Sequence record: MW749003.1
Strand: one strand, 5' to 3'
DNA: 64,000 nucleotides
In this document: positions 29,957-61,791 of the stretch, in pieces
How positions within the stretch are numbered: position 1 is the stretch's first letter
Layout: each line of letters begins with the position of its first letter
Notes under the pieces: generated by a model
The model's database searches: none
The model's input: only the letters and a program-made list of their open reading frames with translations
What the model was told of the DNA's origin: nothing
Made by a program: the position numbers and the translations under genes

Positions 29957-30042
29957 ATGAAAACCTCCAATATTTGATATAATATATTGTTTATTGAAGA
30001 AGACAACAATTAATTATAAACTGGATAAGTAGGAGGATTATT

Positions 30043-33000
30043 ATGTCATTTTTTAAAGGTATTCGGAACATAGAAAGAGTTCAATATGATCTAGTGCAAT
30101 ATTGTGACAAGGAATTTGTTCCAAAATTTATAGCAAGTCAAAATATTGATGAAGATAAATTATACGATACTATTGATTTTAGTTTACAGTTAGCTGAAAA
30201 ATTACATTTAGATTATAATATGTGTTTCACTATTGCAGTAATGCATGATTTTGGTTATATTGAGGAAGATGAAAATAATTTTAATACATTAATGAGCATA
30301 AAAGCAGATCAATTTTTATTGAGATATTTTGATGGAAGTCAAATGGAAATTATTGAGTCTGCTTGTAAAGAACACGATGGTACAAGTAGAGAAACAGGAA
30401 TATTTACATCTTTATATTCAAAGGTTATTGCAGATGCAGATAGGATGTCAATATTAAGAATTGAAGCTATGATTCGTCATTATTGGAAATTCTATTCTAG
30501 TCAAAAGGCATTTTCTAATACAGATGAGCGTCCTAATAAACTAACAGATAAAGAAATTTTTGATAAGATGTATAGTTTTCTTAAAAAAGAGTATGGTACA
30601 ATTGTATCAAAAAATAAATTATTGTTAGAAGCATCAAGAGAAATGATGAAAGATGAAATAGAGAATTCTAATAAAGTATTAAGCTCTGAAGAAGACACAA
30701 AAAGAATGGTTCTACATTTAGCTACTTATGGGGAAATCCAAATAAATAATGATGGAACGCTTACCGTAGAAAAAATAACTAAAGAGCCAATCAGTGAATC
30801 AGATCCTTTTGAATTATTTGAAAAAAATATAAAAGAATCAGTAGATGAACAACTACTAGAAGCCGCACCAAAGAATCTATCAAAGAGACAAAAGGTAGAA
30901 GATTTAATATATAAGGTACTTTCAGTTTTAGATGATACTGGAGCTAACTTGAGAAAATATAAAGAGTTCTTTGGTAAAATGAACGATGAACAATTTGATA
31001 GATATATGAAAAAATTCCTAAAAGATGAAGATGAAAATTTTTATCTTGAAATTTTACCTAATAAAAGTGAACCTTCATTAAAGCAAATTAAAAAAGCACT
31101 AGATATCTTAAAAGTACCAACTGATGAATATGTATATCTTCGACATGATGGTCATAAAAATGATCCTATTAGAACTGCATATAAAGTACCTGTTGGTTAT
31201 ATTACAATTAAGCGGGTACAACAGATCCTAAGTAAAAAGAATACTTATTCTCTTGATATTGCACAAAGAAACATGAAATCGGGTTATAATTGGCTCTCCA
31301 TTATAGCAATATAATGGCAAACACTCTCCTTAATTTCTGGGATATCCTAATTTTTAGGACAATCAGAAGCGAATTTGAATAAAAACCTAATATTCAAAAC
31401 GTTCAACGACTATCCGAAAGCAATCATACGATTGTGAGTAGCGGTGAAATTCCGCAATAGGAGTACGGCTCAAGCTATTGGAGTGGGTGAGAATCCCTTA
31501 AATGGAAACAGGAGGTATCCTTAACGGATAAAGATATAGTCTCGTCTCTATGGTAACATAGAGCAGTTCATAAGAGAACGCAGTAGATGTAGCGAGTCTA
31601 CTGGAAGATACGCAAGTTACAGGTAATGACAAAATTGCCAGAATATCTGATATTGAATCATATAGTCTTGTTGCTATAGGAGCTGATAATGCTTTAAAAG
31701 AATTCCTTGGACCACGAGCTAGATTATTGGCTCGTAATTTCCTTAATTGCTGGAAACTCCTTAGAGCTTATTAGACCACAACGTGACTGGTAACAGTGAG
31801 CGTGAAGGTTATAAGAACTAATAAGATTGGACAATCAGCAGCTAAGCTTTTATATAATTCTTTAAAAGAGCTGACAATGCTAAAACAAAAATATATTTAA
31901 ATTTAGTGTTGGAGGTAATTAAATTTTATGCCTAGAAGAAAAAGCAATGAGGAATTTATGAATGAAGTTATAGAGTTAGTAGGGGAAGAATATACATTTT
32001 TAGAGAAGTATGTACGATCACTGACTAAAATAAAGGTAAAGCATAATATTTGTAATAATATATACATGGTTACTCCTAATGATTTCCTAAATGGTGGAAA
32101 AAGATGTCCTAAATGTACTGTTCAAAAAATGGCTGATCGGTCAAGAATGACAAATGAGGAATTCATTAATAGAGTAAAAAAAGTAACTAAAAATGATTAT
32201 ACCTTTCTAGAAAAATATAATGGTACTAATAACAATTTAAAAGTAATTCATAATATTTGTGGATATAAATATTGTGTATCACCTAATAATTTCCTAAATG
32301 GTGGAAAAAGATGTCCTAAATGTGCTAATAATATTAAAAGAACAAATAAGGAATTCGTTAATGAAATTAGCAAATTAGTAGGAGAAGAATATACTTTTTT
32401 AGATGAGTATATAAATACTGATACGCCTATAAAAATTATTCATAATATTTGTGGTCATAAATATAAAACTTCCCCTAAAGAGTTTATTCATAGAAATTCT
32501 CGTTGTCCAAAGTGTAATTTTCTTAATAATGAATCTTTCTTTTCTAAAGTTATAAAAAAGACATTAAATGAATTAAATATTTATTTTATTCAAGAATATT
32601 CTATTAGAGAGTTGGGTAAAGGTAAAAAATTTGATTTTTATATACCTAGTTTAAACCTATTAATAGAGTATGATGGTAGCCAACATTTCTACCAAAAATT
32701 TAATGATAAAAATGGTTTCTTGTCACAGATAAAAAGAGACCAAGAAAAGAATGATTTTATAAAAAATAGTGAATACACTTTGATTAGAATAAGTTACAAA
32801 ATCAATAAAAACCTAGACATAATAATTAAAGAATTAATAAAAGAAAGTTCAACGACTATCGAAAAATATAATCTATTATTAATTAATAAAAATAATGTAG
32901 TAAATTTTAACAAATATTACAAGAATGCTAATATTAATTATTTTGATTATATTAAGTAGAGTACCCTACAAGCTATTGGTAGTATACTTCTGGGATGAAG

Positions 33001-33352
33001 TATAGTATAGAAAATTTTCTATATTGGGAAACAGGAAACTTAGAAGATATAGTCTCAACTTCTATGGAAACATAGAGCAGTTCATTAATACTATTTTAAA
33101 TAGTATTATGAGAACGCAATGAGTGTAGCGAGCTCATTGGAAGATAACTTGGATAACTCTGTAGCAAAGACAGATATGTATAAAAATATTAATTTATATG
33201 GATATACTTATCTAAAAGATTTAGGTCATGATATTACTGAAAATCAAACTCTTAATACCATGTATGTATATCTAATGGGTGCTGGATTAGGGAATGATTT
33301 ATTAAAAGAGGATACTAATTTAGAAGAACTATTAGATAAAAAAGGAAAGTGA
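30043..33352 (+). CDS. HD-domain / virion RNAP beta C-terminal piece fusion, spliced (exons 30043-31284, 31613-31720, 33152-33352; about 516 aa)
   Basis: MHDFG...DADR HD motifs; VGYITIKRVQQ..KK and MKSG|QVTGNDKIARISDIESYSLVAIGADNALKEFLGPRA|DN align with beta C-terminal GQRFGEME..AL.AYGA...L.E.LT.KSDD; late promoter 30005. Confidence 0.8.
31285..31612 (+). mobile_element. group IA2-like intron, no ORF (328 nt)
   Basis: exon ends GGU; ttaatttctggga, aatcagaag, ttcaacgacta, aagatatagtc; terminal G31612. Confidence 0.9.
31721..33151 (+). mobile_element. group IA2-like intron with homing endonuclease (1431 nt)
   Basis: P1 acgagcu/ggcucgu with U.G at splice site; P7 gacta/tagtc; terminal G33151. 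Confidence 0.92.
31928..32959 (+). CDS. intron-encoded homing endonuclease (three Zn-ribbon repeats plus Vsr/DUF559-like nuclease)
   Basis: H.IC...Y...P..F.....RCPKC x3; FDFYIP...IEYDGSQHF. Confidence 0.85.
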   Translation: MPRRKSNEEFMNEVIELVGEEYTFLEKYVRSLTKIKVKHNICNNIYMVTPNDFLNGGKRCPKCTVQKMADRSRMTNEEFINRVKKVTKNDYTFLEKYNGTNNNLKVIHNICGYKYCVSPNNFLNGGKRCPKCANNIKRTNKEFVNEISKLVGEEYTFLDEYINTDTPIKIIHNICGHKYKTSPKEFIHRNSRCPKCNFLNNESFFSKVIKKTLNELNIYFIQEYSIRELGKGKKFDFYIPSLNLLIEYDGSQHFYQKFNDKNGFLSQIKRDQEKNDFIKNSEYTLIRISYKINKNLDIIIKELIKESSTTIEKYNLLLINKNNVVNFNKYYKNANINYFDYIK

Positions 33353-33356
33353 TATT

Positions 33357-34361
33357 ATGGAGAATAAAAGTAAAAACAATCCCCTTGAGATAAAAGGGGA
33401 TTTTGTTTCATTAGCAGAAAATTTAAAATCATTTTTTTCTAAAGAATTAAAGGAAAATATTATTATTGATAAAGATAATATGCTATTAGAATATGATTCA
33501 AATTTTGAGAAAGAATATTCATTCCCCTCAATCAAAATTGTAGAATCCAATAATAAATTAGTTGAAAGTAAATTTAAACAAATAGAATCTAGACTAAAAG
33601 AAAATTATCAATTTACTAATTATGATCTAAATATAGATGAAGATAAATCAAATAATATAAAGTATATTAGTCACCATTACAATTTAAAGGAAAATAAAAA
33701 TGTTATCTTATCTATAAACATGATTAAGGATAATACGAGATATGATAAAATTATTGAGAGTGTTAATATAAGCCTAGTATTTAGTAATCCTGTTATTACT
33801 GAAACTACGCATTTGGGAATCACAAAAACTAATATTTTAGAAGAAGATTTGTTAATGGAATCAGTATTTAAAAGAAATAAATATAATAATGAATTAGAGA
33901 ATATGGATCGAATAATGCGAATTAATAGTATCTCTACTGTTAACTTATTAAATGTTTTTGATAGTAAATTGGTTAGCATGTTAGAAAGAAGATTTGGAAC
34001 TTCTTTAAATGGAAATAAAGAATATTACACTACTTACAAAAAATCTTATGAAAAGGATCTTTTATTAAGACATTTTGTAGGAGAATATAATAAATTAGTA
34101 AACAACAAAGCATTGCCAAAGCATATTAGTTTTGCTTTCTCAGGACTGTTATATAAGGGACAAATGTACCCATTGTTAATTTCTATTAATAATAATATTA
34201 ATAGGGTGATTGGAGTTTACTGTTTCTTATTAAGTCCAGATACTGAAAATGAGGGTGTTTATCAGATAGGAAAAGCTGAATTATACCACTCACCAGTTGA
34301 TTCACTAGCAAGTGATATATTAAAAGTACGTAAAGTTCTTAAGTGTTCATATTTTGGATAA
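33357..34361 (+). CDS. hypothetical protein, possibly head-internal
   Basis: follows the vRNAP gene; DLLMES motif mid-protein. Confidence 0.5.
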   Translation: MENKSKNNPLEIKGDFVSLAENLKSFFSKELKENIIIDKDNMLLEYDSNFEKEYSFPSIKIVESNNKLVESKFKQIESRLKENYQFTNYDLNIDEDKSNNIKYISHHYNLKENKNVILSINMIKDNTRYDKIIESVNISLVFSNPVITETTHLGITKTNILEEDLLMESVFKRNKYNNELENMDRIMRINSISTVNLLNVFDSKLVSMLERRFGTSLNGNKEYYTTYKKSYEKDLLLRHFVGEYNKLVNNKALPKHISFAFSGLLYKGQMYPLLISINNNINRVIGVYCFLLSPDTENEGVYQIGKAELYHSPVDSLASDILKVRKVLKCSYFG

Positions 34362-36078: not shown

Positions 36079-37654
36079 ATGTCATATATTGAAATCGATA
36101 AAGAATTTTTTATTAATAATATTCAGCCAGAGTTTGAAACTGATTCAGAAATTAATATTCAGGGTAGATCTAAACTTAGATATGGTGCATCAATGTTAGA
36201 ATTAAATCCAAATTCACTAGAATGGGATGACTTAGAAAAAATATATGACATTGCTCAGAATAAAGGCAATAGGTCTGTTATGATGCAAGTTTCAGCGATC
36301 AAGAATTTAATCTCTGACTTTGAAGGAGCTAAGATAGCTAATTTAAAAGCACTTGCAGTTGCACTACCTTCATACTTTAGTGATAATTTAATTGACGGAT
36401 GGATTTATTCTTTGGATAGAAAAAATAATCCAGTCACAGTTGATCCATACTTAATTACAGATATTCGCTACTATCCTCCTAAAAAGGATGATCCAGCGTC
36501 TGTTTCTATTAGATTAGTTGCTAATTCACCTCGTCAAAGTAGCCGCGATAAACGTTATACACGTAGTATCTATTTTGATAGTAGTGATATCAGAGGGAAA
36601 ACAATTCCTCAAATACTGGCAAAAGAGAATCTGTTTCATGAAACAGAGGAACTAAAAAATATCTATCTAGAACAATTAGAATTATTTAATAAATATCAAC
36701 CTCAAAAAACGAAGCAATGGTTATATAGACATAGCAACTAAAAATAGATTTATCAATGATGAAGGAATAATTAAACGAGTTTTTAATGAAGAGTATGATC
36801 CTTATTACTGGAGAAACGAAGCAGGAGTGGACAAAAAATTTGATAGAATTCCACAACATTGCTATATTTTTGGTTTTAACTTAGATACACATAAATATAC
36901 ATGGGTACATGCTACTAATATGAAACCATATGAATACGACACTGGTCTAAGAGATAAGCTAATACTCCCTCAACGACATAAGGATTTAATTGACATTCTA
37001 GTAAGTGATCTTGATATTCTTAAAGAAGATATAATTGAAGGTAAATCTGGTGGAACTACTATATTAGCTACAGGCAAACCGGGACTTGGTAAGACTCTTT
37101 CAGCAGAAATTTATTCTGAAGCAATTGAAAAACCACTATATAAAGTTCATTCAGGGCAATTAGGATTGAGCTCAAAAGATGTTCAAGAAAATCTAGAAGT
37201 AATATTAAAGAGAGCTTCACGTTGGGGAGCAATTGTATTATTAGATGAAGCTGATGTTTTTATTAGAGAAAGAGGAAATGATTTGCAACAAAATGCTGTC
37301 GTTGCAAGCTTCTTAAGAACACTGGAATACTTTGATGGTATTTTATTTATGACAACTAACAGGGAATTTGATGTAGATGATGCTATTAAATCAAGATGTA
37401 TTGCTGTTATTAGATATGAAACACCTTCTGAAGAAGATGCTAAAAAAATATGGAAAGTATTATCTACTCAATTAGAAGTAAACCTTAGTGATGAATTAAT
37501 TGATCAGTTAGTGCTTAAGTTCCCAGAAGCATCAGGACGTGATATTAAAGAACTATTAAAACTTACATCAAGATTTGCCAAAGGAAAAAATGAAGAAATC
37601 TCATTAGAACTGTTTAGACAGTGTGCTCAATTTAGAGCTATTAAAATCAAATAG
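36079..37654 (+). pseudogene. AAA+ ATPase gene split by a +1 frameshift (ORFs 36079-36741 and 36827-37654)
   Basis: +1 frame open from 36680; GKPGLGKT, LLDEAD, MTTNR, SRC; second ORF lacks a well-spaced SD. Confidence 0.6.
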
Positions 37655-57709: not shown

Positions 57710-58859
57710 TTAAAATTGAATTAAAAGGAAATTATCAATTTCTTTTTTAATTTCATCTTCAATAAATAAAACAGCTTTACCGTCTTCAGTATTAAAACTA
57801 ACTGTTTTACCATCTTCACCTAATTTGGCAGTTCTTTCATCTAAACCAAGATGATCAACTGTTGTTTTAATATTTTGACTCTCTTCCTTAATGTAATTAA
57901 GGATTTCATCTTGAGCCACTGACACCATTAGACCTTCATTAAGAATTCTCTTATTCATAGGATGAATAGCATCTTCTTTAATAATATTTGTCTGATAAGC
58001 ATTAGAATGAGAAGGGAAGATTACCCAATCCCAAGTAACAATGTGAAGAGGTTTTTCAACTCGTGTTAGTCCATTCACTTTACGAGTAACACCACCAAGA
58101 CCTCTCATTGAAAATGCTACTTCAGTACCTTGTCTAATTAAACCTTCCATATCTTTACCAACAGCAGTGTTAGTAGTTGCTACCACACCTTTTAGTAATT
58201 TTTGTTCCCACCATAATTTCTCAATAACATGAGACATTCTAGTTTGATCAATGTATGTCTGTCTTTCCATTTTATCCGAAAGAGGGTGCAAATATCTTCA
58301 TATGGATTCGCTACTTCCATACCGTTCTCTTATGAACTGCTCTAAGTTTCCCTAGAGTTGAGACTATATCAAGTTCTTCAGCATTACTGTTAAGAACCTC
58401 TCTATTTCCACTATGCTTATAGTGTACTCCCATTTGGGATAGTCGTTGAACTCCATTGGTAAATATTTGTACATATATTTTACCAATAAAGCTGCTGATT
58501 GTCCAATCTTATTAGTTCTTATAACCTTCACGCTCACTGTTACCAGTCACGTTGTGGTCTAATAAGCTCTAAGGAGTTTCCAGCAATTAAGAGAGTTTAG
58601 ACATAGTATTTCTACTATGAATGGCAACCCTACCAGCCTCTCCGAACAATGATTTACGTCTTAACTTTTCTTGAATTTGAGGAGAACGAATAGCACCATC
58701 TAATGCTTCAAATGCATATTCCCTTCTATTTCTATTACCAGCTTCTGCCTCTTGAAGAATAGCTTCAATTACAACATTATCTTTATTATGCTCAATAATA
58801 TTAGGTTTAACTGGTTCTGATGTAGATTCAATAATTAGAAAACCACAATTTTGATCCAT
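57710..58859 (-). CDS. prohead maturation protease (T4 gp21-like), spliced (exons 58859-58632, 58288-57710; about 268 aa)
   Basis: NRNRR.Y; spliced GEAG|HP; FSMRG; TWDWV..PS. Confidence 0.88.
58289..58631 (-). mobile_element. group IA2-like intron, no ORF (343 nt)
   Basis: P1 tggu/gcca; core ttaattgctgg...aatcagcag...ttcaacgacta...atatagtc; terminal G at 58289. Confidence 0.92.
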
Positions 58860-60195: not shown

Positions 60196-61791
60196 ATGTC
60201 CGTAGAATATCGTACTAATCATTCAACTGGAACAACTGATGAATTCAGTCAAACATTAAAAGAAAGTCATCAATATTTCTTACAAACTCAACAAGTAAAC
60301 ATCCTTGGAGAAGGCTTCAGTGATGTTCTTTCTGAAGCATCCACTTTTAGTGCTTATGTAGATAAATTAGTAGAAGGCTTAGATGCAACTGAAGAAGCAG
60401 ATATGCGTCAATTACTTGCGAACAACCGTCAAGCAATCCTTCAAGAGTCCGTAGTTGCAGGTATCCCTCCAATTGCGTCTCTATCTATGCCAACTATTCG
60501 TAAAATGTGGGCTAAGATTGCATTGAAATATGCTATTCCTACTGAACCTGTTAAAACACCTGCTTTCTCTGTATCATTCTCTAAACCTTATATCATTGAT
60601 TCAGTATCAGGTGAAAAACATTATCTTCCAGAATCTCTTCGTTCTTTAGATAATGGACTTGCTGAAAAAACAAAACTTTCTTCTCAAGCTTATGAGCTAC
60701 CTTTGGATAACAAAGATCTTCTTGCTGATGTAGGTGCTTCTGCACAAGCTGGAGATGCAATTGATCGCCGTTTCCATATTGTTGAAGTTGAAGTTTCTGC
60801 GGCAAGTGCGACTGGAACAGCTGAGACTGCTGAAACAGTTAAAGTAAAAGTTAACTCTAAAATTGATATTAATAACAAACTATATGCTGAAGTTAAAGCT
60901 AAACACTCTGATGGTACTGTAACTTCTGACGTACTTATGGGTGCTGTTGATCCAGAAAAAGGTACTGTTAGCTTAGTATCTCTTCGTCAAGCAGTTAAAA
61001 AAGTTGTATTCCTTGGTTATGTATCTTCTGAGGCTCATAACAGAGCAACTAACGTATCTTTCGATATTGAACGTAGAGATATCACTATCGGAACTGGCGA
61101 ACACTTAGAGGCTTCTCTACCACTTGAAATGCTAACTGATACTATGGCACTTTATCAAATTGATGGTGCTAATGAAGTGGTAGACACAATGTCTAACGTT
61201 ACAGCCCAAAAAGTTGACCAAGAAATTTATAACTTTATTGATGCGGCTTTCCAATCTAACCCTACTTATATGGGTAAATTTAACGTTCATCCTGCACCTC
61301 AGTTTGCTGGAAATCCTAGAGACTGGTTGGATGGTATCAAACGAGTAATTGATTACTTTGCTCAAAAAATTAAATCTGAAACTTACTACTACCAAGGTTA
61401 CTTTGTAATTGTTGGGAACCCACTTGATACTGCTTTGATTCCAAATGTTACTTGGACATTTAACCGAGTATCAGATGCTCAAAATGGTATTGAAGTAGAT
61501 TACAGTATTGGAGCTGTTTCTGGTGCAAGCCGTTACACAATTGTTTCTTCTGACTTGATTCCTCAAGGAGAATTGACAATGTTCATGGTTCCACTTACTA
61601 ATAAATTTATGACGTTCAAGTACTATCCGTACACTTTCAATGTTGTACACAACTACCTGAACACTCGTAATCCTAATATTCCATCCATTATGATGACTAA
61701 ACGTCATACCCTTGAAGAGTTCCTTCCAATGGTATGCAAAATCAAAATTGAGAACAATGATGGTACTCTTGTTTCTCAGTATAATGGATAA
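60196..61791 (+). CDS. major capsid protein precursor (T4 gp23-like)
   Basis: highly expressed codon usage; ILQES propeptide; MPTIRKMWAK...PTEPVKTP; late promoter 60087; position after protease and scaffold. Confidence 0.75.
   Translation: MSVEYRTNHSTGTTDEFSQTLKESHQYFLQTQQVNILGEGFSDVLSEASTFSAYVDKLVEGLDATEEADMRQLLANNRQAILQESVVAGIPPIASLSMPTIRKMWAKIALKYAIPTEPVKTPAFSVSFSKPYIIDSVSGEKHYLPESLRSLDNGLAEKTKLSSQAYELPLDNKDLLADVGASAQAGDAIDRRFHIVEVEVSAASATGTAETAETVKVKVNSKIDINNKLYAEVKAKHSDGTVTSDVLMGAVDPEKGTVSLVSLRQAVKKVVFLGYVSSEAHNRATNVSFDIERRDITIGTGEHLEASLPLEMLTDTMALYQIDGANEVVDTMSNVTAQKVDQEIYNFIDAAFQSNPTYMGKFNVHPAPQFAGNPRDWLDGIKRVIDYFAQKIKSETYYYQGYFVIVGNPLDTALIPNVTWTFNRVSDAQNGIEVDYSIGAVSGASRYTIVSSDLIPQGELTMFMVPLTNKFMTFKYYPYTFNVVHNYLNTRNPNIPSIMMTKRHTLEEFLPMVCKIKIENNDGTLVSQYNG

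Follow-up and report, generated by a model that had tools for sequence, protein, structure and literature searches.

Why is a subunit of a virion RNA polymerase (vRNAP) made with an HD-hydrolase-like domain in front of it, and what becomes of that domain when the virion is assembled? The question is raised by a gene in the 64,000-nt stretch of record MW749003.1 analysed here (the window), which makes up the final 64 kb of the record of Bacillus phage vB_BspM_Internexus, of the PBS1/AR9 group. In our reading, this gene probably encodes a precursor of the vRNAP beta subunit's C-terminal part (beta-C), from which a decayed HD-like domain is removed by the head protease at an LLE/A motif (the slash marks the cut).

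The 5-kb region around the gene is 100% identical to Internexus, 99% to PBS1 and 96% to AR9. Judged by its sequence, segment 30043–31284 is the first of three exons of a gene orthologous to AR9 g078, and the exon 1 protein is 99.5% identical to AR9 gp078, the whole linker between the two domains included. The Internexus annotation describes the open reading frame (ORF) 30043–31314 merely as a 'putative hydrolase'. In GenBank, the coding sequence of AR9 g078 is joined from three pieces and carries the note 'proteolysed protein, contained only RNAP domain is found in virions, virion RNAP subunit; HD family phosphohydrolase'. AR9 gp078 has been described as the product of a late gene and as one of five vRNAP polypeptides (PMC5312081); the HD fusion has been described as peculiar to AR9, PBS1 and BpSp, all Bacillus jumbo phages, with a role stated to be unknown (PMC7598289), while 'active HD phosphohydrolase' is how the survey of Iyer et al. 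2021 describes the domain (PMC7824862). The GenBank note and this literature already record that the two parts are fused and that the protein is proteolysed. At its core the finding is therefore known, and the cleavage site and the pattern of modules described below are incremental additions. In a literature that did not extend to the primary AR9 genome paper, we came upon no report that names the exact bond that is cut. What we add is a conserved junction motif, a residue-level account of catalytic decay at variance with one description in print, and the observation that diverse modules have repeatedly been fused at this N-terminus.

The polymerase part of the protein is matched by PHROG 3233 'RNA polymerase beta subunit' at E=4e-20. 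A profile of the homologues that have no N-terminal extension matches only the bacterial beta C-terminus, in more than 30 Protein Data Bank (PDB) sequences, and the family profile matches residues 1222–1311 of E. coli beta at E=2e-3, in agreement with the beta C-terminal segment that a sequence-only reading of this DNA had placed after the linker. Searched alone against PDB sequences, the beta-C piece returned spurious alpha-Rep repeat matches, and RNAP beta was reached with the family profile only. The predicted mature protein has 243 residues and a mass of 27.9 kDa; free-standing homologues have 236–255 residues.

The N-terminal domain is more degenerate. It reaches only 18.8–20.1 bits against Pfam HD (PF01966), below the cut-off of 22, and a sequence search of the HD part against the PDB gave noise only. 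A phmmer scan of 1.84 billion proteins found 165 relatives, most of them standalone proteins of about 210 residues that score 38–42 bits with PF01966 and weakly match NCBIfam PRK10119 (YedJ-type). The homology is transitive, since standalone proteins above the PF01966 threshold are linked to the phage domain by phmmer (E=1e-17 to 1e-10). An AlphaFold2 (AF2) model of residues 1–274, built with the phmmer relatives as the alignment, is confidently all-alpha for residues 1–228, with a predicted local distance difference test score (pLDDT) of 86.7 and a predicted template-modelling score (pTM) of 0.81. In a Foldseek comparison of this model with the PDB, the ten best matches were all HD-superfamily hydrolases, led by B. 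subtilis YpgQ (probability 1.00, target TM 0.69). The N-terminal part thus models as the HD fold claimed from the letters alone, and on this model it is an HD fold descended from the family of small YedJ/YpgQ-like phosphohydrolases. It shares the fold of these proteins but, unlike them, is fused to a polymerase subunit and is without three of their seven near-invariant His and Asp residues. A free-standing degenerate HD protein of the phage type, 40% identical and with HE in place of HD, also occurs with no RNAP part (P0004, 223 aa). This could reflect a gene that has been split, an exon annotated as a gene or a fragmentary contig.

Between the two parts lies a linker with 12 acidic and four basic residues, where pLDDT falls to 31–42 in a model of the complete exon 1 product; the candidate cleavage site lies within a segment below 50. 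EQLLE-AAPK occupies residues 269–277 (nt 30847–30873), exactly where the sequence-only reading had the acidic linker end. We compared 42 non-redundant homologues of the RNAP piece with N-terminal extensions of 23 to about 630 aa, taking as the junction the 16 residues that precede a conserved KRxK. A hydrophobic-x-Glu motif is found at the junction, 6–10 residues before the KRxK, in 41 of the 42 extended homologues, with a background rate of 0.34; hydrophobic-hydrophobic-x-Glu is found in 37 of the 42 (background 0.12, binomial 6e-29, a figure that overstates independence because the sequences are phylogenetically related). The residue after the junction Glu is Ala in 29 of these 37 homologues. 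Moreover, seven extension-less homologues, including g203 of phiR1-37, have their Met start at the junction position, and the density of hydrophobic-x-Glu motifs over the 30 residues upstream of the junction is 2.7 times that of the remaining extension sequence. A junction motif of four residues kept across extensions that otherwise cannot be aligned is hard to explain except as a processing site, and the exact bond E273/A274 is a reasonable prediction that we consider likely to be correct. The N-termini of AR9 g125 and g145 have no such motif. In phiR1-37, g203 starts 2 nt past the stop of g204, which encodes a 505-aa structural protein (L006:963-2480).

T4 gp21 cuts after Glu in Leu/Ile-x-Glu. 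A protease of this type is encoded in the window by two exons, which match adjacent parts of the Peptidase_S77 profile (E=5.7e-6 and 2.8e-3), together with a major capsid protein precursor of the Gp23 family. The sequence-only reading had likened LLE/A to L-x-E motifs in the capsid and protease propeptides, and this comparison stands for TLKE/S of the capsid protein, where L21-x-E23 followed by Thr, Ala or Ser is invariant in 120 homologues, and for FLIIE/S of the protease, a possible self-cleavage site. It does not extend to VLSE/A of the capsid protein (aa 44–48), which was rejected as a counterpart: the motif is not conserved, and most homologues have Asp there. The capsid site suggests a short propeptide, of 23 residues versus 65 in T4 gp23. 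About 295 nt of intervening sequence (58292–58586) separate the two exons of the protease gene.

Processing of this kind has precedents in giant phages. The vRNAP beta subunit of 201phi2-1 loses an N-terminal propeptide at TFE-275, and the propeptide motifs of phiKZ-type phages are A/S/G-x-E (PMC5694885). In 201phi2-1 vRNAP beta and in the head proteins of SPN3US and phiKZ, a gp21-like protease cuts after the Glu of a short motif, as proposed here. The precursor in the window and giant-phage head proteins alike hold extra motif copies inside the propeptide, and the three linker motifs ISE/S, IKE/S and LLE/A recall the multiple cuts in giant-phage propeptides. At the same time, the propeptide of 201phi2-1 is on beta-N, whereas that of the window is on beta-C and has an enzyme-derived fold, and the P3 residue here is Leu, Ile or Phe, as in T4, rather than the Ala, Ser or Gly of phiKZ and SPN3US. 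A note on phiR1-37 sp24, 'mature N terminus is Asp56', mismatched the translated sequence and was not used for specificity.

What has happened to the HD site itself? Seven residues, H35, H39, H68, D69, H78, H111 and D133, are near-invariant in the standalone family, and at these positions the phage domain has Ile35, Lys39, His68, Asp69, Asn78, His111 and Asp133. Three of the seven are lost, so that the metal-binding H...HD...D set is incomplete, while D131 is kept as well; the sequence-only reading had correctly seen HD and DADR as kept and the first His, now Lys39, as replaced. Among the 15 fused AR9-like homologues that we compared, H35 and H78 are lost in every one, whereas H39 varies, as do D69 (to Glu or Gln), H111 (to Asn or Phe) and D133 (to Val, Ile or Asn); BpSp has lost all HD motifs. 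The complete residue set was found only in P0011, a distant beta-C fusion protein of 886 aa. Identity among relatives is 40–50% in the HD part and 80–84% in the RNAP part. This pattern of substitutions suggests a fold that is kept for a non-catalytic purpose, with catalysis probably lost.

The HD domain is only one of several modules found at this position. Among the extensions of the homologues we could distinguish at least five sequence families with no relation to one another, plus singletons and short peptides: HD; HD with a P-loop kinase; HD-like with P-loop and GNAT; transglutaminase-like with HD; and, in Staphylococcus phages, a zinc ribbon with a part that we could not assign. The extension of Listeria phage LPJP1 is a singleton that matched no other extension. 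In the metagenomic homologues P0005, P0158, P0011, P0171 and P0181, the N-terminal modules are P-loop kinase, GNAT acetyltransferase, transglutaminase-like or intact HD domains, and some metagenomic beta-C homologues have extensions at the C-terminus as well, of 110–290 residues (e.g. DUF6582). The 440-residue beta-C extension of Staphylococcus jumbo phages (L013:1229-2548, L004:2220-3554) opens with a CxxC...CxxC zinc ribbon and gave no family match; its linker has four hydrophobic-x-Glu motifs in a row preceding the conserved site.

We propose the following course of events. The gene would be transcribed from its late promoter late in infection and its two group-I-type introns spliced out, giving a precursor of a 228-residue HD-fold domain, a 45-residue acidic flexible linker and a 243-residue RNAP piece. 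In the prohead, the phage's own serine protease of the T4 gp21 type would cut QLLE/AAPK after Glu273, and the two similar upstream motifs would probably be cut too. The RNAP piece alone would stay in the virion (the virion content is taken from the AR9 record), which is why the N-terminal domain would be a pro-domain that is removed, rather than an enzyme that is injected. Such a pro-domain is also favoured because three of the seven HD-site residues are lost and the others vary among relatives. Its likely roles would be those of a handle for entry of the polymerase into the prohead, of an assembly chaperone, or of a means of holding the polymerase in an inactive state until it is packaged. 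The first of these, a targeting role, we infer by analogy with the T4 capsid targeting sequence (CTS) of the internal proteins and Alt, an N-terminal segment that guides its protein into the core of the prohead before being removed by gp21 after Glu. However, the T4 CTS has 10–20 residues, whereas the pro-part in the window has 273 and includes a folded domain.

Several observations weigh against this scenario, some concerning the state of the domain and others the bond that is cut. In the subgroup of AR9, PBS1 and Internexus, H68, D69, H111, D131 and D133 are all retained, and since Iyer et al. 2021 also term the domain 'active' (PMC7824862), residual activity is possible in this subgroup. 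The domain might then be an active phosphohydrolase of nucleotides, ppGpp or cyclic nucleotides, which works in the late infected cell or is co-injected after its release in the head. The fold is well preserved, and catalytic modules do occur at the beta-C N-terminus, because the complete HD site of P0011 and the P-loop kinase and GNAT modules of other homologues appear intact. On the other hand, other residues occupy the position of the tetrad's first His (H..HD..D) and those of two more near-invariant His, the remaining site residues vary among close relatives to the point of complete loss in BpSp, AR9 virions are recorded with the RNAP domain only, and related phages have unrelated modules or none at the same position. 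For these reasons the co-injected hydrolase, one of two functions offered by the sequence-only reading, is disfavoured and the other, a packaging tag or removable pro-domain, is favoured; we consider an active enzyme unlikely. The domain was also rejected as the dTMP phosphohydrolase of PBS2/PBS1, because that enzyme is a PF06941 deoxyribonucleotidase, of a different protein family, and g078 is a late gene.

As to the bond, the homologues are phylogenetically related and their linkers are Glu-rich, so the junction counts are inflated. The P4 residue is Gln in Internexus and AR9 but Ile, Val or Leu in most relatives, and IKE265/S, ISE252/S or LLLE196/A could be real or additional cuts (LLLE196/A was rejected as a conserved site, the motif not being kept in relatives). 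Processing could therefore be real while the decisive cut falls at a different point of the linker, or is the work of some other protease, so that LLE/A is not the mature N-terminus: three similar motifs lie within 25 residues, the P4 residue is atypical, and the window also encodes two zincin proteases (homologues of AR9 g051 and g118). We regard this as quite improbable, as LLE/A aligns with the conserved site of all relatives and with the Met start of the extension-less homologues, and the motif is of a type generally known to fit T4-type head proteases, giant-phage motifs likewise ending in Glu. That the fusion stays uncleaved and the HD domain works within the injected polymerase is hardly credible: vRNAP subunit processing does vary between giant phages, and SPN3US beta-N keeps its long N-terminal region attached and unprocessed (PMC5694885), but the cleavage site is conserved and the AR9 protein, nearly identical here throughout the linker, is recorded as proteolysed. 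Release by the prohead protease at LLE/A, as the sequence-only reading had it, is therefore the best-supported reading, given the AR9 note, the junction motif and the S77 protease in the window. The observations of that reading were confirmed in every detail, and its interpretation was partly supported.

The gene is interrupted twice (Table 1). We mapped the exons with the help of a homologue that has no introns, from Staphylococcus phage SA1, which we aligned to the window, and then read the junctions. The uninterrupted ORF runs to 31314, but its final nine codons are intronic and the coding part stops at 31284, the end that the sequence-only reading had given. The exons rejoin in frame with respect to the intron-less homologue, giving a spliced precursor of 516 aa and 59.9 kDa. 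Both boundaries follow the group I rule, with U as the last exon base and G as the last intron base; introns 1 and 2 have common 5' and 3' core blocks, the predicted fold of intron 1 is stable (z = -3.9), and the AR9 annotation calls both introns group I. Neither at the gathering threshold nor with E<=1 did Rfam searches of the whole window and of 31100–33500 find an intron family, Intron_gpI included. By these sequence features, two paralogous, group-I-like introns of the self-splicing type interrupt the gene. AR9 gp078 and PBS1 gp269 are the same gene with the same three-exon layout, and their neighbours PhoH, the virion protein g077 and g080 are common to the locus in the window. Intron content, by contrast, varies by strain: intron 1 holds an endonuclease in PBS1 and none in the window, and the intron 2 endonuclease is longer in the window (1032 nt) than in AR9 (825 nt). 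Elsewhere in the window, at about 36079–37654, the Internexus annotation has two ORFs (INTERNEXUS_260 and 261) for an AAA ATPase whose AR9 counterpart, g083, is a single gene of 1647 nt; a sequencing error, a frameshift or an intron could account for the division.

Table 1. Positions in the window of the beta-C precursor gene, its parts and signals, and of the head protease and capsid genes.
Feature	Position	Strand	Basis or remark
Late-promoter consensus match AACA-N6-TA	30005..30016	+	start site expected at 30016; AR9 consensus from PMC5312081
Strong ribosome-binding site AGGAGG	30031..30036	+	6 nt ahead of ATG at 30043
Exon 1 (414 aa), predicted vRNAP beta-C precursor	30043..31284	+	final exon base T
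Degenerate HD-superfamily fold, aa 1-228	30043..30726	+	AF2 model, Foldseek, phmmer relatives
Lys39 codon	30157-30159	+	replaces first metal-binding His
H68/D69 codons	30244-30249	+	HD motif
Acidic, predicted-disordered linker, aa 229-273 (45 residues)	30727..30861	+	ISE/S, IKE/S, LLE/A motifs
Proposed maturation site L271-L272-E273 / A274	30853..30864	+	cut between nt 30861 and 30862
First 141 residues of predicted mature vRNAP beta C-terminal subunit	30862..31284	+	PHROG 3233, family profile
Intron 1 (328 nt), without ORF	31285..31612	+	final base G; core blocks common to intron 2
Exon 2 (36 aa), with conserved beta C-terminal motif	31613..31720	+	final base T
Intron 2 (1431 nt), with homing-endonuclease ORF	31721..33151	+	final base G
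Homing endonuclease ORF in intron 2 (343 aa)	31928..32959	+	repeated treble-clef zinc fingers and Vsr/DUF559-like nuclease domain
Exon 3 (66 aa plus stop)	33152..33352	+	SA1 homologue alignment, junction reading
Prohead protease 3' exon, T4 gp21-type	57710..58291	-	Peptidase_S77 profile positions 95-190
Prohead protease 5' exon	58587..58859	-	Peptidase_S77 profile positions 41-89; N-terminus FLIIE/S
Major capsid protein precursor, Gp23 family	60196..61791	+	TLKE/S aa 20-24 at nt 60253-60267

The range of modules also allows a broader and rather doubtful idea, that in jumbo phages of Gram-positive hosts the vRNAP beta-C N-terminus is a general docking point for cleavable cargo, to which separate lineages have attached modules of their own, each time in front of one and the same protease site, and that some of the modules are injected host-takeover enzymes, not necessarily including the decayed HD domain of the AR9 type. 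If this were true, cargo that rides into the prohead on the polymerase and is released there would amount to a modular effector-delivery device. For the beta-C precursor as we read it, the role of the HD domain, stated to be unknown (PMC7598289), becomes directly testable through one specific conserved bond, in a harmless phage of B. subtilis. The catalytic site decays while the junction motif stays constant across unrelated N-terminal modules. The results also point to how a polymerase of five pieces may be recruited into the capsid.

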